NCBI GenBank assembly: GCA_965603825.1
Contig: CBFDEM010000021.1
Location: 868,001 to 932,000, forward strand
Reading direction: 5' to 3'
Source of the DNA: Blepharisma stoltei ATCC 30299
Lineage: Eukaryota; Protista; Ciliophora
Length of the DNA: 64,000 bases
Each line of letters starts with the position of its first letter. Within the stretch, counting starts at the first letter, position 1. Position numbers and translations under genes: made by a program. Below the pieces are notes generated by a model, which was given only the letters and a program-made list of their open reading frames with translations, made no database searches and was not told the origin of the DNA. This document shows, one piece after another, positions 2,507 to 33,489 of this stretch.

Positions 2507-2521
2507 CTAAATAAAAATTAC
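2507..2521 (-). other. 15-nt spliceosomal intron
   Basis: GTAATTTTTATTTAG; conserved position (VP.x|xSW) in paralogs at 8025-8039 and 13124-13138. Confidence 0.85.
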
Positions 2522-8944: not shown

Positions 8945-9420
8945 TAAAAATTACTTTTTGGAACATTAAAAGAGAATGATTTGCTGTATTTAGCGCCACT
9001 AGTGTCTATATAATCAAAATCGAAAGCACCTTCAGTTGTTGATTTTTCTATATAAGAATTAGAATTGAAAGCAGAGTTTCCAATTTTCATTACTTTTGAA
9101 CTAGGGATTGATTGGAAATTTACCCAAAGCCCAACAGATCGAGCATTTGATCTACAAGGTGTGAAGTTTATGAGTCATCTCTACTCGAAGTTGCTCATAT
9201 ATACTGATGAATAATCAAATACTGGTTCTACTGCGGAGTTAGTTGAATTGGGTCTGTGCTAACAAAATGATTACTATCTTGTTTTACCTTGACATCTGAA
9301 CTATCGTAAAAAGTTTTGGAAAAAATAAGGTCAAAGCATGGGGTGAAAGTACTTGCTTTGGCCATAGAGATAAGCAGAAGGACGAGTAAAATATTCAGTG
9401 ATGGGAATAAGCAATTTATA
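8945..9420 (-). pseudogene. Cys-rich family copy C3, 5' half (ends inside intron 1)
   Basis: Homologous to the C1/C2 N-terminus; start codon mutated; stops after GTAATTTTTA at 8945-8954. Confidence 0.8.
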
Positions 9421-9518
9421 AAAGAAATAGATTTAATAGTAAATTTATGCACATATTCTAATAAGCTAATAAGTTTTTTGGCGAATTATAAGAGCAAGGT
9501 TTTAAAATAATTATTAAA

Positions 9519-10346
9519 TATTTAGAATCCTGGATTTTTTTGATGCTAACTTGGAAATCAGATTTAATTGATATTTATAAGTTTGATAAACCATTAGGAT
9601 TTTTGCGTACTTCATTATATGCTACACCTTCTGGTGGGGTTGCTGGCTTTGGCTATGGTGTTAGAGCTTACTTATATGAAATTTCTTGGTATGGATCAGG
9701 TTGGTACTTCTTAGGCTATATGATTATGTATGATTGCGATGGTATCTACACATATTTTGATAGGACTTGTGCAGGGGCCTGCTCAGATTCCAAGTGCCAT
9801 CCTACTCATCAATGCTTCAGCTCAACAACTGCCTGCACTTCTTGCGATTCAACTGGATGCAAAGTTTGTGGAGAAACCAACAAAGATCCTTCAACTTATT
9901 GCAATCAAGACTGTCCTGCAAACTGTGATAGATGTTCATCTTCTACACTATGCACTCAATGCAAATCAGGGTCTTTCCTCTACGATAAAGCTGGAGCGGC
10001 ATTATGCATTGGTAATTTTTATTTAGCTTGCTTAGACTCCTGCACTTCTTGCACAGCAACTCCTGATTGTTTTTACTGTACTAGCTCAATTGTTCAAGTT
10101 GATTCTATTGGGTATCAGATAAGTTTCTCTGCTCCATATATTGAACTTGATTTTGCTCATCCACTTGTTTCGACTCTGACTATAAATAGCATTGGAGCGA
10201 CTTTAGATGATGGAACAGTGATAGATACCTCAAACTGGACTCTAAACTCTTGCGTTGCAAGCGCAGTAAGCTGCACAATTACAGCTAATAGCTTGAGTGT
10301 TAGTCAGCTACCTTTAAACATGGTCTTAAAGTTTAACCAAGCTTAA
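9519..10346 (+). pseudogene. Cys-rich family copy C3, 3' half (begins inside intron 1, opposite strand to the 5' half)
   Basis: Starts with TATTTAG at 9519-9525, then the conserved SWIF exon; ORF 9540-10346; intron 10012-10026. Confidence 0.8.
10012..10026 (+). other. 15-nt spliceosomal intron
   Basis: GTAATTTTTATTTAG at the conserved family position. Confidence 0.8.
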
Positions 10347-22317: not shown

Positions 22318-23058
22318 TATAAGATTGAATTCTGCTATTTAAGTTTTGCATATAAATTATTTTAAATTTATTTATAATTTAACTGAATTAATGATAAAAT
22401 GAAACTTTTTCTTTTTAAATTTATCTCAAATACTAAAATTGATTGAAATAAAATCTTATTGCTTTGGCTAAATATATTTACTCACAAATATCATCTTATT
22501 CCTCCTTAAGATTGTGAAAATGACTTTACCAGCAAAAAAGCTTTAATTAATATATTTATTTTTTAATCAATTTATTCGAGCTTGCCTTTACTTTTGGAAC
22601 TCTGCATAACAAAGACTAGAGTATTATTAGTTAGAAGATTTGAAAAATTATAGCGAAATATTTTAATTGAAAATATTTCCTAGAAATATATTTAAAATTT
22701 AAGAGATGATATTAGTTAGCCTTGTTTGACAGATAATTTAATATTAGCTGAGAGCTGATTTTTGTGCAAGTTCTTACTATAATTGCACAGCTTTTTGCCT
22801 AAAAGCTCAAAAATTAAGTATCCAAGCTGATGTATCTACTGCATATTTCAAGCTTTCTTAAAACTATATCCATTCCATTTAAAACCATTAGACAAAGAAC
22901 GGCGTTTTTATACTCCATTATAGAGTTCAGCCAGATCTCGTTTGTCATTAAAGATTATTTTTTATTGCAGCAGTGATATAAAAAATTATAAAATACGCTT
23001 TGATAAATGAATCTATTTAATTATTAAATAATGCTGCTTTTCATATGTAAGATGTATA

Positions 23059-23913
23059 TTTAGAATCCTGGTTTTACTTGTTAATGTATTGGTATAATGG
23101 GCTAATTCATATTGTAATGTTTGGGCAGAATTCACTTATAAAGACTCATAATGGTGGCTATTCAAAGCCAACTGGTACTGTGGCTCTTGGCTTTGGCTAT
23201 GGTGTTAGAGCTTACTTGTATGAAATTTCTTGGTTCAGCAGATTTACTTTATCGAGCAATAGTAACCAAATTACTCTATTTGATTCGTCTGGTAACCTCA
23301 AATATCTAGATGGGACTTGCACAGTAACTTGCCCAGATTCCTGGTGTCATCCTACTCAAAAATGCTTAGGCTTGGCAACTTCCTGCTCTTCTTGCGATTC
23401 AACTGGATGTAAAGCTTGCTGAACAAACAAGGATCCTACAACTTTTTGCAATACTGACTGCCCTCCAATCTGTGCTAGATGTTTATCTTCTACAGTATGC
23501 TCTCGATGCAATTCAGGGTATTTCCTCTATGATAAATCTGGGGCGACATCATGCGTTGGTAATTTTTATTTAGCTTGTATTGACTCCTGCGATTCTTGCA
23601 CAACAACTCCTGATTGTTTTTACTGTGCTAACTCAATTGCTCAAGATGGGTTGACTTGTAGAGTTGATTCTATTGGGTACCAACTCAGCTTCTCTATCCA
23701 AATATTGAACTTGATTTTGCTCATCCGCTTGTTTCGACTCTGACTAAAGGCACCATTGAAGTGACTCTAGGTGATGCAACAGTGATTGATACCTCAAGCT
23801 GGACTCTAAACTCTTGCGTTGCAGGCGCAGTAAGCTGCACAATTACAACTACTAACTTGAGTGCTAGTCAGCTCCCTGCTGAGATTAAGGTATCGTTTAA
23901 CCAAGCTAACTAA
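23059..23913 (+). pseudogene. Cys-rich family copy C5, 3' part only (starts inside intron 1)
   Basis: Begins TATTTAG then the SW exon; intron 23559-23573; frameshift near 23697. Confidence 0.8.
23559..23573 (+). other. 15-nt spliceosomal intron
   Basis: GTAATTTTTATTTAG at the conserved family position. Confidence 0.8.
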
Positions 23914-24078
23914 TCTCATTTCTTAATATTTTATAAATTATAAATAAAAATATTTCATAAAACCACTTTAGATTTATTATCAAAATGCATTTTATAATAA
24001 TGTTTTAATTCACGCTGTAATAAAACAAGGTCTTTAATGACAAAGCAGCTCTGGCTGAGCTAATTACATTATTTAAAG

Positions 24079-24096
24079 TGATTAAGGTGTCTAAAC
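24079..24096 (+). repeat. Left target-site duplication of the LINE (18 bp)
   Basis: TGATTAAGGTGTCTAAAC, identical to 29309-29326. Confidence 0.95.
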
Positions 24097-24109
24097 TTTT
24101 TTCATTTTT

Positions 24110-27100
24110 ATGAGTCAGCAGAAAAAGAAGATTGTGACACTCAAGGCTGCCCAAGAAGAAATTCAACATTTGGGACTTAGCGGGAGTGGAACATTTTTCG
24201 GATTCCTGGCTCCAAACGAAATTTTGCCTGAAATAGAAGAATCACAATACCTCGAGAACTCAATAAAGGTCTATTTTTCCAAATACAAAAACAGGGAAGA
24301 CAAAGGTGAAAAAAGGAGCTCTATGTTGCACTCATACTGGCACTGGAAGTTGCGGCAAAACCTGGAGATATCCTGAAGTGCAGACAGCTGCCGTCCGGAG
24401 ATGCAATAGTCATCTTCACCAAGAGCGAGGCTAGAAAGCAACTGCTGCAGGAAGGAAGAATGATGATCCAGCTTTGAAGTCAAAAAGTAAATGTACCAGT
24501 TGGACCAGTCGGTAGAAACGGTGACATTAACTTTCTCAGGTACCTCATGCAAGTGACATTACCAATAGAAATCGGAATTGGAGATGTCTTGGAAGCCTTG
24601 GAGAGCAGGTGCAGAGTAGTGGAGGTTGTGATAGACAACATAATGAGAGATGAGAATACATGATATGCAGTTCACTTCAACCCCAACTCGAGGTACAGGA
24701 TTTATGGAGAGTTTGCGAAACTGGAAGATGCGATAGACCTCCCAGAGGAAATCGTAATAAAAGGTAGGAGAATCTTTATCAATCATGCAGCGTCGCTGCT
24801 CTGTGGGATCTGTAAGCAGATAGGACATAACGATGAGGGCCACAAAAGGATGGAGATGCAAAGAGAAGAAAGAATACGAGTAGATGGTATAAGGAGGAAA
24901 AAGAAGGAGGAAGAAAGGAGGGTGCGAGTGAAGGCTATAGGGGAGAATTTAGGATTAAGAATGAAGTTAGAAGACGATAAACATAATAACTCTACATATG
25001 CTGGGCTGATTAAAGCTGAGGAAGCCAAAACAGAGGCAACAAAAGAGCAGATAGATGGGAGGACGAGTGGACTGGCAAAGAGAACTCCGCAAGAAGCAGG
25101 ACTAGTTGATCCACCAATGAAGCGAGCTAAAATCAGGAAGAATCGGACTATGGCGATCGCTCACCTGAATATACGGAGTAAAACAGAAGAAGGAACAGAT
25201 AGAGAAATTTCTGCAAGAGGTGGGGGTAGAATACTTGGAATAAGTGAGACACACTGCTCAGAAACAGATTTCCTACCAAAAATCAATGGATTCAACTGAA
25301 GCCACAACCCAGGAACAGAAAGAAGTGCGGGTGCTGGAATCTTATATAGGAAAGGACTAGCGATTGAAGAAACCAAAGAATTTACTCAAGGAAGGATAGC
25401 AGGGATAGTGATTGAGAGTCAGGTAATAATAGAAGCTTACTCACCTAAGGAAGGGGACGAAAAGGCTCTGGATGCTTTCTATGAGGGTTTAAACGAAGCT
25501 TGTGAATGGGGGAGAGCTAGGGGAAAATATCTACTACTATTTGGAGATTTCAATGCTCATATTAGAGGGTGATGATCAGACCAAACCAACGGAAACGGAC
25601 ATCTTTTTAAGCAACTATGTGACGAATGAGGGTTGGAGATACTGCCGATGAACAAACCGACTCATTTACACTCAAGTGGATCCACATTCTGCCTTGAATA
25701 CTGCGCGATTGACAGACACATATTAGGCAAAGTGATAAGCTATGAGGACATTCAAAATAACCCGATCAAATCGGATCATTTACCAGTACTCCTTAAAATA
25801 TGAGAAGGATGGTGAGAGACGAACAGACAAACAAAGAAAATGCTGAGACTCGATAGGCTCCAAAGCTCCACATACCTCAAGCTATATCAAGAAGACGTCA
25901 AGCGAGATTTGCAGGACCTGGACATGAATGGAGATGTTGGACAGATCTACAGGGAGATAAACAAGATCGTTCTTGGATCGGCGGAAAGAGTATTAGGGGT
26001 CAAAGATGGGCAAAGAAGTGTGCTGGGAAGAGATTCCTTGTTGCTGCTTCGTGAAGCACGGAGATTTAGGTGAAAAGCGTTAAAGGCGCTGAAGAAGGAT
26101 GCTGGAAAGTATGATGAGCTAATGAGAAAGCACAGGCTAAAAATGAAAGAATTTAAAAGAGAAAGGAGCAGGATAGAGGCCCTTACAAAAAGGGAGCAGG
26201 AAATCGAAAATGCAATCATTGGTGAAAAAGACATGTGAGTCCTTTACAACAGGATCAAAAGACTGAAAAGAACCGAAATAATAAAGCTTAGTGGCAAAGA
26301 GGAAGAAGAGATGGTAGCATGGTGACAGGCCCAATACTCGGATTTGGTGGTTGAGACTGATCTCCCTAACGCAGACCCGATATTGCCTACCTGGGAAGAG
26401 GTGAATTGAGCCATATCTACGCTGGGAAATAAGAAAGCAACAGGCCCTGATGGAGTACCGGCAGAGCTAATTAAAGAAGGCGAGGAAATCATGAAGGAAA
26501 TATATTGGAGACTGATCCGAAGGATTTGAAAAGAAAGATACTTACCGGTAGAAATGAAGGAAGCACTAGTGGTTCTGATCCCAAAAAAGAAAGGTACTAA
26601 AACACCGGAGGATTACAGGCCAATAACGCTACTTAACACGGTCTACAAAATATTAGACAAAATAATTGCGACGAGATTGGCGCAGGAAATAAATACGAAA
26701 ATGATTATGCACACATCGCAAGCAGGATTCATCACTAATAGGGCGACATCTGACCAGATACATAAATTGGGAACAATAATTGAGTACTGTCTACTGAAGA
26801 AGAGGAAAATAAGATGCGCATTTTTGGACATTAGCAAAGCATTTGGCTCAATAAGACACAACAATTTATACGAGACTATGAAGCAAAGAGGGATCTCCAC
26901 AGACAATATACGAATGCTGATAGCAATGTATAAAGAGGCAGAAAGCAGGATAATTATGGACGAACATCTAACCAGATCTATCAGTATAAAAAAGGGTGTG
27001 AGACAAGGTGGAAGTTCATCTCCAGTATGCTTTAATTTTATACCAAACGAGCTAGCATGGAAAATAGACGAAATGAACATAGGGGTTACAGTAGATGAAG

Positions 27101-29249
27101 ACCGGCAATTAAAACTGGGGTTGCTACTCTATGCGGATGATATAGTGCTACTCGCACATAAAAAGAAAGAATTACAGGCACTCTGCGACATATGCGATCA
27201 ATGAGCAAAGTACTACTCGCTAAAGATTAACCAAAGTAAGTCGGTCGTGGTAGATTACTCGAGTAGAGCCGGAGATCTGCATATAGGAGTAAACGGACAG
27301 AGGCTAAAGCAAGAGAAACAGTTTAAATACTTGGGCAAAATAATAGCAAGGGGAAAACATAACAAAGCAGACTCGAAGAAAACCACGGAGAAGACCAAAG
27401 CAGCATGTAGATCGACTAAAGCGATGCTGACAATGATGAAAAACATAAAGGCAACAAAAAAGGCCATCATAGCAAGAGCGTGTATAGATCCAACAGCATT
27501 GTACGCGAAGGAATGTAGCCAGCAAAACTGAGATGATATTGCGATGAAGGTAGCTGAAAATGAGAGGATGGGAGTAGCAAGAGCTATACTGGTAGCACCA
27601 AGAGGTACAGCGAGAGAAACAGCAGGGCTAGACCTTGGATGAATCAGTTTAAAGAACCAAATGAGAATGCGCACCCTGTTCTTTAGAAAGAAAATGCTGG
27701 AAGCAGAGGACCAGCTCACAAAGGTGATAATGAAAATCAATAAGCACAATGCACTGGCCTGAGAAAAACGATGCAAAGTTTATATGAATAATTTGGGAAT
27801 TGAGGAATATGACAACAAGCAGATTAAGAGGACAGAAGCGAAACAGTGAAAACGAATACTAGAAGAAGCTGTAAAGAGATGTAACCTAAAGGAAATGGTG
27901 CAGAGACTGGAAGCCGAGACGTACAAAACAACGGACCTCTACAGATGGACGTTTGAGGGAGCCAAGGCTACATACACTCCAGCGTATGTTCGGCTCAACT
28001 TCAATATGCACATGGCAATTGGTGCTATGCACAGTATGAGAGCAGGGTTTAACAGCAGCAATAGCTGTGCACACAAGAGACATCTGACCAAGACGCATTG
28101 TGTAATAATTGCAAGGTGGTGGAAACTGAGAAGCACATGCTAGTGCAATGCCCAATGTATGTGACGAAGAGAACAGAGCTAAAAAATAGCATAAATAAAG
28201 TGTTACAGGATGCACTGATAATGGATGTATCATTGTATGATGACCCGTTGCAAGGTCTGGTAATGCAGGTTGCACAGGTACGAGAAAAGCTAGGAAAAGG
28301 TGTACACATAATAGACAAAAATGAGGCACGGGTTAAGCAAGCATTGAGCGCCAGTGAGAATCATCTAGAGTGGCAAATGCTAGAACATGAAGATTTGCCT
28401 ATTCAAGGCATGCAACTACAAGGCATGCCATATTGTGGGGCGATTATGGACGGGGATACAAATGCAACAGCTGAGATGCTAGTGCAAGACACGCACATAA
28501 TTGACAAAAAAGAGGCACTTAGCGACAGTGGCACACAAGGGAATCATATGGAGTGACGGATGCCACAACATGAAGATTTTCTTATGCAGGACATGCAATT
28601 ACAAGACATGCCATATTGTGGGGCGATTATGGACGAAAATATTGAAGAAATTATGGCGTCTGCAGGTACTGATGCTACACTTGGAACACAACTACAGCCG
28701 GTGCAAGCACATGCTGCACATGATATACAGGTGGCACATGATATGCAAGATGCACATGCACACACAAATGCAGCACCTGAAATGTTAATACAAGATGCAC
28801 ACATATCTGATGAGGAAGAGGCACGGATGAAGCAAGCATTGAATGACAGCGCTATACAAGGGAATCGTCTAGAATGGCCGATGCTACAACAGGAAGATTT
28901 GCTCATACAGGACATGCAACTACAGGACATGCCATATTATGGAGCGCCGATGAGTGAAAATACACAAGCTACGCATGAAGTTGAAATGCAGGACGGTTGG
29001 CAGTGAAACTATAACAAAATAGAAGCAATGGATTTACTGATGTGTACGTGAAGATATGAAATGATAATAGACAACTGAAGTAGGGAAGGGAAGCATGAAG
29101 TGGCGTTGGAGGTGGATCGACTAGTTAAGAAATTCCATGCAGCGACACTGAAGGAAAGAGCGGTGAAGCATCTTGAAGAATCAGGAAGGAAAGATGAAGT
29201 GGAATTAAGACAGAGAAAGATTACCTACTGATTTAAAAATGATCCATAA
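24110..29249 (+). pseudogene. LINE polyprotein (~1,710 aa): gag-like zinc knuckle + AP endonuclease + reverse transcriptase + C-terminal zinc knuckle + repeat tail; two -1 frameshifts
   Basis: With TGA=Trp: CGICKQIGHNDEGH; HLNIRS, ISETH, GDFNAH, SDHLPV (APE); KATGPDG, YRPITLL, QAGF, GVRQG..SSP, YADD, FKYLG (RT); CNNC...ETEKH....C. Frameshifts at ~24310 and ~28095; stop TAA at 29247-29249. Confidence 0.9.
28305..28965 (+). repeat. Three imperfect ~50-55 aa Met/Gln-rich coding repeats in the LINE C-terminus
   Basis: HI.D..EA...N..EW.M...ED...Q.MQLQ.MPY.GA.M occurs three times. Confidence 0.9.
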
Positions 29250-29281
29250 GGATCGTTGGGCGGTTAATTGCCGCTAGATAA

Positions 29282-29282
<1 letters not shown>

Positions 29283-29313
<31 letters not shown>
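29283..29313 (+). repeat. (ATTG)7 microsatellite 3' tail of the LINE
   Basis: Read directly from the sequence; overlaps the first bases of the right TSD. Confidence 0.95.
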
Positions 29314-29326
29314 AAGGTGTCTAAAC
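29309..29326 (+). repeat. Right target-site duplication of the LINE (18 bp)
   Basis: TGATTAAGGTGTCTAAAC, identical to 24079-24096. Confidence 0.95.
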
Positions 29327-30403
29327 CACGCTCCTAATAAAGGGACAAAGGTTTTACAATAAGGCTTTTTAATTTCATATAAAATTTTATTAGCTATCAA
29401 AAGCTAAGAGTAAGACACTATTTGTCGAATGTTGAATAAAAAATAGTGCAAATCGTTTATTAGCATAAGAAAATTGTTTAACTTCGCTGTCAAACGAATC
29501 TTGTAAAAAATATTTGCTTATCAAACAACTATAATCTGTCTTATAAGAAGATTAAAAGATGAAAGTTCAAGATAAAGCTATTTATTAAGAAATAAAAAAA
29601 AATAGCATATGGAGGTCAGCCTTGAAATTCAATTATATGAGGGAAAAAATTACCTTTTTAAAAGATATAATTTTAAAATATAATAATCGATATAAATTTA
29701 AATAGAATCCTGCTTATATATTGATAGATATTTTTTATTCTCGCATTTCTTTTCGAAGAAACTAAGATAATATTACGTTAAAATAATGAGTTAATAAAAT
29801 TTAACTAAAAAATTCAATTTTGTTATTATATTTAATTTAAAAATCAAAATATTTTCTAAAAATTTAGGAACAGCTTGAATTTCTGCTCTATTTATAGATT
29901 TTTTGAGCTTCAGCCAGAGCTGATTTGTCATTAAAGATCTTTTTTGATTTCAGCGTGACATTAATAATTATTAGTAAAAGCATTTTGATAAATAAATCTA
30001 TTTGATATTTAAGCTGATTGTAATATTTTTATTTATAAGTCAAAATATTAAGAAATGAGATTAGCGCAGTAAGTTGCACAATTACAACTAATAACTTGAG
30101 TGTTAGTCAGCTCCCTGCTGATATTAAGGTATCGTTCAAGCAAGCCTAGCCTGCAACGCAAGAGTTTAGAGTCCAACTTGAGGTATCAATCACTGTTGCA
30201 TCACCTAGAGTCACTTCAATAGTACCTTTAGTCAGAGTCGAAACAAGGGGATGAGCAAAATCAAGTTCAATATTTGGACTAGAGAAACTGAGCTGATACC
30301 CAACAGAATCAACTCTACAAGTCAACCCATCTTGAACAATTAAGTTAGCACACTTAAAACAATCAGGAGTTGTTGTGCAAGATCTGGCAGGAGTCAGTAC
30401 AAG

Positions 30404-30418
30404 CTAAATAAAAATTAC
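30404..30418 (-). other. 15-nt spliceosomal intron
   Basis: GTAATTTTTATTTAG at the conserved family position. Confidence 0.8.
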
Positions 30419-30921
30419 CAACGCATGATGTCGCTCCAGCTTGATCATAGAGGAAATACCCTGAATTGCATTGAGTGCATACTGTAGAAGATGTTCATTT
30501 AGCACAGTTTTGCAGGGGAGTTAGCATTGCAAAAAGTTGAAGGATCTTTGATGGTTGTTCCACAAGCTTGACATCCAGTTGAATCGCAAGAAGTGCAGGC
30601 AGCTGCTAAGCTTAAGCATTTTTGAGTAGGATGGCACCAGGAATCTGAGCAGGTCCCTGTACAAGTCCCATCGATGTTTTTTTATTTTGTCCGAGAAATC
30701 AAATGCAATAATTGAGTTAAAAGGAGTCCAGATACTAGCTGAACTGAACCAAATAAGTTCATACAAAATGAGCTTTAACACCAAAACCAAAGCCAACAGC
30801 CCCACCAGTTGGAGAATAATAATCACCATTACGGCTGTTTGTTATTGAATCCTGCCCAAACATAATAATCATAGTGTTCATGTCATTCCAAAACATCACA
30901 ATAAAAATCCAGGAGTCTAAA

Positions 30922-31392
30922 TATACCTCTCGCAGATGAGAAGCAGCATTATTTACTAATTAAGATAAGCTTAGGAAAGTGTTAAGATAAGATGGCCTTA
31001 TGATTTCAGTTTTAACAAATAGAAAAGTATTTAAGGATCAACAGCTGCCCTTTATAAACTGTTCCAGCTAGAAATGAACTTCTAGTTAGTGCATTTTCCA
31101 ACTAGAACATTGTTGAAAGTAGAGCTATCTAGCGTTAAAACCTTTTTTTCAAGTGCCACTGAAAGAAAATGCTGGGCGAGCGATGCAAAACCTGCCCGAA
31201 CACAATTTCCTATTGCTTTAGACTCAATTTTCTTCTCTTTTTGGTTTCTGACAGCAGCAAACTCCTCAACTCTTAACAAGCCTAGAAGAGAAAGGGTAAT
31301 CGTCAATTTATTTGAGTGTTTAAATTTTAGATAAATATTTTTTTTATGGCTGTGGCTAGATTTATATGGCAAATACTTACAGAATAAGTATA
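30922..31392. mobile_element. TA-bounded IES-like insertion (469 bp plus one TA)
   Basis: CTAAA-TA-[insert]-TA-AAAATTAC. Excision leaving one TA restores the exact 15-nt intron. Both ends read TATAC inward. Confidence 0.8.
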
Positions 31393-33489
31393 AAAATTAC
31401 TTCTTGGAACATTAAAAGAGAATGATTTGCTCTTTGTACTGCCACTACCGTCTATATAATCAAAATCTAAAGTACCTTCAGTTGTTGATTTTCCTATATA
31501 AGAATTAGAATTGAAAGCAGAGTTTCCAATTTTCATTACTTCTGTGCTAAGGGTTGATTAAGAGATGCATAATTGCCACAAGGTGTGAAGTTTATGAGTC
31601 ATCTCCACGAGAAGTTGTTCATATGGACTGATGAGCAACTAAAAGCTGGTTCCACATCTGAATTGGCTTGAGCAGGGCTTGTGTTAGCAAAATGAGTGCT
31701 ATCTTGTTTTACCTTGACATCTGAGCTAGAGTAAAAAGGTTTGGTAAAAATAAGGTCAAAGCATGGGGTGAAAGTATCTGATTTGACCATAGAGGAAAGC
31801 AAAAGGACGAGGAAAGTATTCAGTGATAGGGAATAAACCATTTATAAGAGAAAAAAATTTATTAAATTTATGCACATTTTTCCTAATAAAGTTTTTTGCG
31901 AATCATAAGGAAAATTAAAATTTTTGACCTTCTTAAATTTTAAAACTTATTTTAATTTAATAAAATACTACATTCAATAAATACCCAATTAAAATATCTA
32001 CTTCTCTGATTTTCTAAATTTTTTCTAAAGTTAATAAACAAAAAAATATCGAAGCGAAAAAAAAAATTTCTCTAGAGACTTTAAACATTTTTCTTAATCT
32101 AATACTTAAATATCTCTCTTTTACTAAGAATAGACAGATATTAAAGTAAACCTCATATCTATCTAATAAAAAGATAGGGCTGCTGAAAATTTAAGATTTC
32201 AAAACCTTATTCAATTCCTTAAAAAATGCAAAAAATTGAAGCTCAAGATAAAGTGAAATCATTTATTTTGGAAAAGGGATCCAGCTTATCAATCTAAAAA
32301 ACGAAAATTCTAGATTTTTGAAGCTTACATGAAAACCAATTATTATTTCAAACAAATATCGATTTTGAAATAGAGATGAATAAATATGAAAGGCAAAAAG
32401 GACTTTCTTTGCAAAAATTATTCAACAAAGAATAAATAAAACGCGAATTAGGATCAGAGGGTAAATATATATTTAACTTCTATTCTTTAATATTCCCCAG
32501 AATTTTATTGCACATTTTAAAAAATATAGAGGAGCTTTTACTTGGAAAATAGAAAAATGCGAAAGCAGCTTGCTATTTTTTCAATTTCCCCTATATTAAA
32601 TTCATAAGCAAACAGCTAATTTTATTTTAGATTTATAAAAAATTATTTGTTGAATATTGGATAAAATTTATTAAAAATGTTTAGCTAAATCCTTGAAAAA
32701 TATTCACTTATCAGATAAGTGCTGATAAATTTATATGAGGATTAAGCATGCGACTTAATTAAGAAATAAGAAGAAATAGGCCTCTATGATCAATCTTGAA
32801 ATCCATTTTTTGCCTGCAGATTTTGATAGAGATTAAGTATTAAAATTTTAATTTATTTGATTTAATAGAATTGAGCAATTTAAAGCATGCAATTCATGAC
32901 AAAATCAAATATTCTGTCGAAAAAGAGAAGAAAATTTCCTTAGTTTCTACGAAATAAAATGCGAGAATAAACAATGCATATAATTTATAAGCAGGACTCT
33001 ATCTAGATTTATATTAATTTATGATATTTTAAAATTTTTTTCCCTTTTATTTCCTTTAAAAAGGAATTTTTACTTTCATATAAATCTAGCGCCAATAAAT
33101 TGAATGTCAAATTTGGTCTTCAGAGACCTATTTCTTCTTATTTCTAGGTAAAAAGCTATATATTTAGTTTTATTTCTTCCAAGCCTTTTTAGCATTGAGT
33201 TCACGTTTAGCCAAGCCTAACTAATCTCATTTTTTTAATATTTCGGATTATAAACTAAATCTATTTCATTTTAAATATTTATAGTTCTTAATATATAGGT
33301 TTAAATAATTAAATAAATTCATTATAAAACGTATTTGTAATAAGCTTTTATATCACGCTGTAATCTTTTACCTTTAGCTTCAGCAGCTATGCTGCCACAG
33401 GAATTATCGATCCCCAGCATTTCTTCCGGTTTCTACCACAGATTCTCCTCAGTTTTTCCAAGTTCTCTTTATTTTCCCTTCAACTTTTG

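Follow-up and report, generated by a model that had tools for sequence, protein, structure and literature searches.

The macronuclear (MAC, somatic) genome of the ciliate Blepharisma stoltei ATCC 30299 comprises 41 Mb, was assembled with Flye from HiFi reads, uses UGA as a tryptophan codon and has introns that are predominantly 15-16 nt long (PMC9942806). The stretch analysed here likewise reads UGA as sense and has introns of 15 nt, as described in that paper. This stretch, the window, is 64,000 nt of the somatic assembly (C21:868001-932000), and in one of its genes, which we refer to as C6, a 15-nt intron is interrupted by 467 bp of DNA set between two copies of TA. The locus raises the question of whether this insert is an internal eliminated sequence (IES) whose retention or excision could switch the gene on and off, as a first-pass annotation of the window proposed, or the residue of something else. 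We find that it is present in somatic DNA and lies in a pseudogene, at a TA that recurs as a junction in related gene copies. Our preferred explanation, and on balance a probable one, takes it for a TA-bound IES, former or failed, or for the fossil of a TA-targeting element, now a fixed part of a dead gene in somatic DNA.

The minus-strand order of the first intron of C6 is GTAATTTT-TA-[467 nt]-TA-TTTAG, spanning 30917-31400. The interrupted unit of 484 nt is made up of the 15-nt intron and 469 nt (a 467-nt body and one TA), inserted at T9-A10 of the intron. Its parts, all on the minus strand, are:

31393..31400, minus strand: 5' part of the intron, reading GTAATTTT
31391..31392, minus strand: left copy of TA, which together with 31390 makes a TAT repeat; homology to the paralogs restarts at 31391
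30924..31390, minus strand: 467-nt body of the insert, 34% GC, ending TAC.../...GTA
30922..30923, minus strand: right copy of TA, which provides the 3' splice site with its A at -6
30917..30921, minus strand: 3' part of the intron, TTTAG
31085..31396, minus strand: 104-codon stop-free frame in the insert, without a start methionine

The earlier description of a TA-bounded element of 469 bp nested exactly in a 15-nt intron is confirmed by the sequence and by a BLAST comparison of the window with itself, in which homology between C6 and its paralogs ends at 30923 and restarts at 31391, making the insertion exact to the base. Removal of the insert from TA to TA does regenerate, in silico, the 15-mer GTAATTTTTATTTAG, which is the intron of the paralogs C1, C2 and C4. 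Some details of that description needed adjustment. The duplicated TA is present, although the direct repeat is in fact the longer TAT (context GTAATTTT[TAT]AC...GGTA[TAT]TTAG), and the letters TATAC can be read inwards at both ends, although they amount to an inverted repeat of three complementary bases past the TA, for which the probability by chance is ~0.02 at the local base composition.

Bulk somatic DNA of the sequenced strain carries the insert, and its excision is not detectable. Contigs of four sequencing runs (X1, X6 and X11 from DNA, X8 from RNA) were compared with window positions 29600-32300. A single X1 contig of 850 nt (30626-31478, record 4) spans both junctions without a base difference, at a depth of 77 compared with 79-97 in neighbouring contigs, and two X6 contigs (30626-31033 and 31031-31478, records 21 and 22) together do the same, again with no base differences. 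An excised joint, with 467-469 nt skipped, was absent among the joints listed for all four runs, and the excised form of C6 that the first-pass annotation had envisaged was accordingly not found in the contigs. Nor was a spliced joint, with 484 nt skipped, among the joints listed, the coverage of the C6 copy being low: RNA contigs matching C6 exactly reach a depth of only 3-5, and one of them (X8 record 29, 30766-30944, depth 3, no differences) runs from exon 2 into the insert. A search of protein collections with a query made of exon 1 plus the junction found no insert-free or germline allele. Because the insert is present in somatic DNA, and so lacks the defining feature of an IES, we file it as IES-like and not as an IES of this strain.

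It had also been argued that excision from DNA must precede splicing of the RNA. This does not follow, since the duplication of TA preserves the splice signals, the 484-nt unit retaining a GTAA 5' end (31400-31397), an A at -6 (30922) and a 3' TAG (30919-30917). In length, the unit lies far outside the 15-16 nt given for the species (PMC9942806).

The state of the host gene bears on the idea of a switch. The relevant parts of C6 are:

31401..31841, minus strand: exon 1, with a signal-peptide-like start, MVYSLSLNTFLVLLL
30419..30916, minus strand: exon 2
30404..30418, minus strand: second 15-nt intron, intact, with the same 15-mer

Relative to C2 and to Cx, a copy consisting of exon 1 only (8945-9492), exon 1 of C6 carries a 22-nt deletion at ~31566/31567 which shifts the frame, and the first in-frame stop is a TAA at 31538-31536. 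An RNA contig (X8 record 31) agrees with the assembly over 31513-31605, covering the site of the deletion. C6 is a pseudogene. The proposal that retention or excision acts as an on/off switch therefore fails for C6, as the frameshift and early TAA in exon 1 persist after removal of the insert and no intact gene would result. Elsewhere in C6 the assembly has extra letters when compared with the Illumina-type contigs, near 30764 (one), 30691 (two), 30513 (one) and 29908 (one); contigs of X1 lack them at all four places and those of X6 at the first three. They are probably assembly errors in a region rich in paralogs, and the frames of exons 2-3 of C6 are consequently not fully reliable; the lesion in exon 1 stands.

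C6 belongs to a local tandem array of secreted Cys-rich genes, for one product of which UniRef gives the name 'TNFR-Cys domain-containing'; no Pfam domain was found in the exon pieces of C1 or C6, which were searched separately. Nine exact copies of the 15-mer GTAATTTTTATTTAG lie in the window (starting at 1974, 2507, 7485, 8025, 10012, 12701, 13124, 23559 and 30404) and mark two intron positions of the family. The 15-mer is kept perfectly at both positions even in the distant copy C4, whose exons are 44-61% identical to those of other copies, and this conservation would imply that the tiny-intron sequence is under very strong constraint. The intron homologous to the interrupted one, and the places where the family departs from it, are:

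2507..2521, minus strand: uninterrupted homologous intron of C1
8025..8039, minus strand: uninterrupted homologous intron of C2
13124..13138, minus strand: uninterrupted homologous intron of the distant copy C4
23017..24058, plus strand: C5 (annotated as P0003)
23017..23058, plus strand: relic in C5 of the insert's final ~40 nt, immediately preceding TTTAG (23059-23063)
8945..8954, minus strand: junction of Cx, GTAATTTT-TA joined to the region upstream of C2
9510..9525, plus strand: junction of C3, with only ATTATTAAATA between homology to the region upstream of Cx (ending ~9509) and TTTAG (9521-9525)

A further copy just beyond the window, C0, has an uninterrupted intron that differs by one base (GTAATTTTTACTTAG). 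The three states that the first-pass annotation distinguished in the family are thus borne out: the insert is absent from C0, C1, C2 and C4 and retained in C6, whereas C5, Cx and C3, as well as a fragment at C21:845247-845398, have a relic or a mis-joined sequence. The cause suggested for these states, heterogeneous editing of a paralogous IES, is not supported here.

It is the last group that makes the intronic TA noteworthy. In C1, the homolog of the region to which Cx is joined reads GGGAA-TA-AAAAG; as there is a TA at the matching place, the join between Cx and C2 is a TA-to-TA deletion, through which some of the spacer and all that remained of Cx were lost. In the fragment at C21:845247-845398, 23 kb upstream, homology to the family ends at GTAATTTTTA(TT) and gives way to unrelated DNA, with TATTTAG found 30 nt downstream and no exon 2 after it; the probability of meeting this heptamer within 60 nt by chance is ~0.02. 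In C3, ATTATTAAATA is the start of the C5 relic, and C3 can tentatively be read as a form of C5 that lacks ~28 nt between a pair of ATA repeats, of which the one on the right would be the intronic TA. A gene the size of C1 contains 99 TAs, and by our own estimate the probability that two or three independent junctions fall on the same one by chance is ~1e-4 to 1e-6, which makes coincidence unlikely. On the simplest reading, an excision activity specific for TA used, or still uses, the intronic TA as a boundary and at times paired it with a different TA. With regard to the fragment itself, ~845388-845432 of C21 reads GTAATTTT-TA-[28 nt]-TA-TTTAG, a 45-nt 'interrupted intron' without a recognisable exon 2, and an 84-nt piece with homology to the last exon of the family lies directly upstream of its exon-1 piece, giving a patchwork of fragments.

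The relic in C5 shows that the insert is old. It is 85-87% identical to the insert of C6, the adjoining exons being ~80% identical, and is joined upstream to 3'-flank sequence of the family through an overlap of ~11 nt. Since C5 keeps the end of the insert at this level of identity, the insert is probably older than the split between C5 and C6. Trees of exon 1 and of exons 2-3 are star-like (75-84% identity); in them C2, whose intron is intact, pairs with C5 at a support of 0.83, and the pair is joined by C6 at a support of 0.90. This position of C2 implies either a precise loss of the insert in some copies or gene conversion that has blurred the tree. A clade of C5 and C6 that would date a single insertion was considered and dropped, as the trees are star-like and place C2 with C5.

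Taken together, these features suggest the following course of events. The element, which may once have been germline-limited, would have reached the intron ahead of the split of C5 from C6, and its boundary TA would have been recognised by the TA-cutting IES excision machinery, which would have produced the TA-to-TA joins in Cx, in the 845-kb fragment of C21 and probably in C3. In C6, excision would either have ceased or never have taken hold, and the gene would have decayed.

In a DNA search of the 41,464,486 bases (64 contigs) of the somatic assembly, the insert matches itself and a 47-nt relic in C5 only, so that it is a single-copy sequence, and no dispersed copies at non-homologous sites were found. 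A six-frame search of the same genome gave no protein-level paralog, a search of Rfam no family match and a search of phage DNA no match. The first-pass annotation was right that no transposase is present, as a domain search showed. Terminal inverted repeats of at least 10 bp were not found, the ends having only TAC/GTA past the TA. Its 'coding-like relic' fares less well: there is a stop-free frame of 104 codons (31396-31085), but against shuffled sequences this is borderline (P ~0.012 with three stops, 0.05-0.07 with the two stops of the organism), and nothing credible was found for it in Pfam, PHROGs, a word-indexed protein search or an exhaustive HMMER search. The frame is only mildly unusual and its coding origin unproven. 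The single match, to DUF7623 (E 1.7e-7), was rejected as spurious, because it is the summed score over a 9-fold repeat protein with ~25 bits for each stretch, and PPR-like leads for the frame (Atlas) were weak and under the recognition threshold. An ordinary TA-targeting MITE (a miniature transposable element with inverted repeats) had been named among the findings that would speak against an IES. When other copies were sought, none bar the C5 relic was found in the somatic genome, and the ends are unlike the published Bogo/BogoMITE and BstTc1 repeats, BogoMITE and BstTc1 being mobile elements known from the germline of this species; membership of a MITE family was therefore rejected. A 484-bp insert in another gene family, at C21:860950-861442 and ~7 kb before the window, shares no sequence with the one in C6, and the equal length is coincidental.

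The array as a whole is largely decaying. Frameshifting indels or in-frame stops occur in exon 1 of Cx (8945-9492), C2 (8040-8500) and C6 (31401-31841), those of Cx and C2 including 1-nt indels, and C3 (P0002) and C5 (P0003) are annotated as N-terminally truncated proteins without the signal-peptide exon. A long interspersed nuclear element (LINE)-like element occupies 24079-29326, between C5 and C6. C5 lies within an inverted-duplication structure, as both its 3' flank (23969-24061) and the segment 22924-23015 repeat the 3' flank of the family in inverted orientation. An 84-bp segment at 30063-30152 shows opposite-strand joints (30063/30152 or 30064/30148) in contigs of all four runs; family members or strains therefore carry it in one orientation or the other.

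How far, then, does the reading of the insert as a former or failed IES carry? The anatomy fits published B. stoltei IESs and the same TA recurs as a junction, but the insert is not removed from somatic DNA. Several further points weigh against this reading. Somatic DNA alone was compared, and germline-limited status of the insert at any time is unproven; the 3-nt inverted repeat is trivial, and TA or TAT repeats are weak signals in DNA of 33% GC. Contigs drop rare variants, and low-level excision could escape view for that reason. The order of events in the paralogs is blurred by the star-like trees and may be blurred further by gene conversion; the joins in Cx, C3 and the 845-kb fragment could, instead of being products of an excisase, go back to one ancestor with the insert and have arisen by microhomology deletion in the germline. 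The same anatomy and the same recurrent junctions would also be expected of the main rival, which we consider somewhat unlikely: a live IES whose retention in ATCC 30299 is nearly complete and whose excision would still take place in other strains, in part of the molecules or following certain conjugations. Retention could in this case be inherited maternally and depend on small RNAs, as in Paramecium, and homologous IESs would occupy this TA in the germline copies of the other paralogs. What favours it comes from material that departs from the assembly. Every X11 piece listed has ~90-93% identity with the window, and X11 is probably another strain; one of its contigs stops at 30923 and another starts at 31390, each at a depth of 11-13, whereas the interior of the insert is represented by a single 151-nt contig (93% identity) at a depth of 2. 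Depths of 2-3 may, however, be those of single-copy DNA in this run, given that an intergenic contig (record 16) has 3.4. The X8 run also contains RNA contigs of ~90% identity at depths of 30-54. One of these (record 30, 413 nt, depth 32) is anchored at 31415-31528 and ~30630-30670 and is too short for the 744 nt between the anchors, the leftover of ~258 nt comparing with ~257 nt expected for an insert-free spliced message, and another (record 32, 31600-31760) has variants that match no paralog in the assembly (best 10/16) and are mostly missing from the X1 and X6 DNA. The published B. stoltei RNA series is a mix of ATCC 30299 and HT-IV, and insert-free RNA may have as its source another member of the family in the other strain. 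As these hints fit an insert-free expressed relative, a different family member or a low single-copy depth in X11 alike, we give them little weight; the excised joint is seen in none of the four runs, and the frameshift in C6 leaves retention with no phenotype to switch.

A bolder version, in which the intronic TA is the live germline IES boundary of the whole paralog family, with ATCC 30299 retaining the C6 copy in its soma by maternal, small-RNA-dependent inheritance, other strains excising it and alternative partner TAs deleting half-genes (Cx, C3 and the 845-kb fragment) during somatic development, seems to us quite unlikely. We regard as decidedly improbable an ordinary germline insertion unrelated to genome editing, for instance one in which a piece of some lost gene, or filler DNA, was captured at a double-strand break, the TA/TAT being chance microhomology and the breakpoint being inherited through rearrangements of the array. 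The unique sequence without terminal inverted repeats, the 104-codon open frame with its slightly raised GC and an array rich in rearrangements and frameshifts and containing a LINE would all suit such an event, but the open frame has no homolog in the searches made, and the breaks of Cx and the 845-kb fragment at the same TA are left unexplained, their sequence past the TA being unrelated to the insert. That the whole 484 nt is spliced as an unusually long GT-AG intron, with no need for DNA excision, is very improbable: the preserved GTAA, A at -6 and TAG would permit it, but introns here are predominantly 15-16 nt (PMC9942806), no 484-nt joint is listed, record 29 of X8 reads from exon 2 into the insert, and exon 1 is frameshifted regardless. 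An assembly artefact, with an IES-bearing germline read built into the somatic assembly, has a reported parallel in the one Paramecium IES assembled into the MAC reference (PMC3464196), and small indel errors do occur nearby; it is nevertheless effectively refuted by independent contigs, derived from short reads, of two DNA libraries that carry the insert and both junctions, by the X1 depth of 77 against 79-97, and by the lack of any insert-free contig.

The reading as a former or failed IES gains from comparison with known systems. In B. stoltei, TA, TAT and TATA are the commonest direct repeats of IESs, which have a median length of 255 bp with a long tail and no universal inverted repeat, and many of which are intragenic, including in introns (10.1101/2022.05.02.489906). 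Introns interrupted by IESs are mentioned by Seah et al. (10.1101/2022.05.02.489906 / PMC9942856), and MITE-derived introns are attributed to Huff et al. 2016 in what Seah et al. (10.1101/2022.05.02.489906) say of them. Like the long non-periodic IESs of Seah et al., the insert has a TA-containing repeat and a length of a few hundred bp, is intragenic and unique, and has ends reading TAT-A. It differs from B. stoltei IESs, which are defined by their absence from somatic DNA, in being present there, and it lies outside their length peaks. With TA-targeting Tc1/mariner/pogo MITEs it shares a TA/TAT target duplication, small size, lack of a transposase and an intronic site, but its inverted repeat is only 3 nt, it has a single somatic copy, and its ends match neither BogoMITE nor BstTc1, both of which have C-rich inverted repeats of 30-38 bp that the insert lacks.

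In Paramecium tetraurelia, 5.4% of IESs are in introns, paralogous IESs occur at the same position, and alternative boundaries give larger deletions (PMC3464196). The insert resembles these IESs in being TA-bound and intronic, at the same site in paralogs and with joins like those from alternative boundaries. It differs from them in belonging to another ciliate class, in lacking an end consensus of the TAYAGYNR type and in being known here from sequence and contigs. Retained or maternally controlled IESs, with MAC retention that may be heritable, were reportedly described in this species by Duharcourt et al. in 1995, and the Paramecium mating-type switch is said, by Singh et al. in 2014, to work through the IES-like excision of the mtA promoter. 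That switch is the model behind the on/off idea, as retention or excision of a TA-bound segment sets expression. An intact gene and the observation of both states distinguish mtA from C6, which carries a frameshift and is seen in the retained state alone.

Intronic, retained and paralogous IESs, maternal control and alternative boundaries are already documented in Paramecium, and the insert opens no new question; its overall interest is modest, and what stands out most is that one and the same TA is used repeatedly in several paralogs. For annotation it is a caution, in that introns longer than 99 nt are not called in the B. stoltei genome. Were the less likely idea of a live boundary shared by the whole family true, programmed DNA editing would shape the repertoire of secreted Cys-rich proteins in an early-branching ciliate. 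If the insert is a former or failed IES, as we favour, it is a concrete heterotrich case of an eliminated sequence turned into permanent somatic DNA, and the set of paralogs records the reuse of the same cut site, which would be useful for understanding how IES boundaries are recognised and lost.

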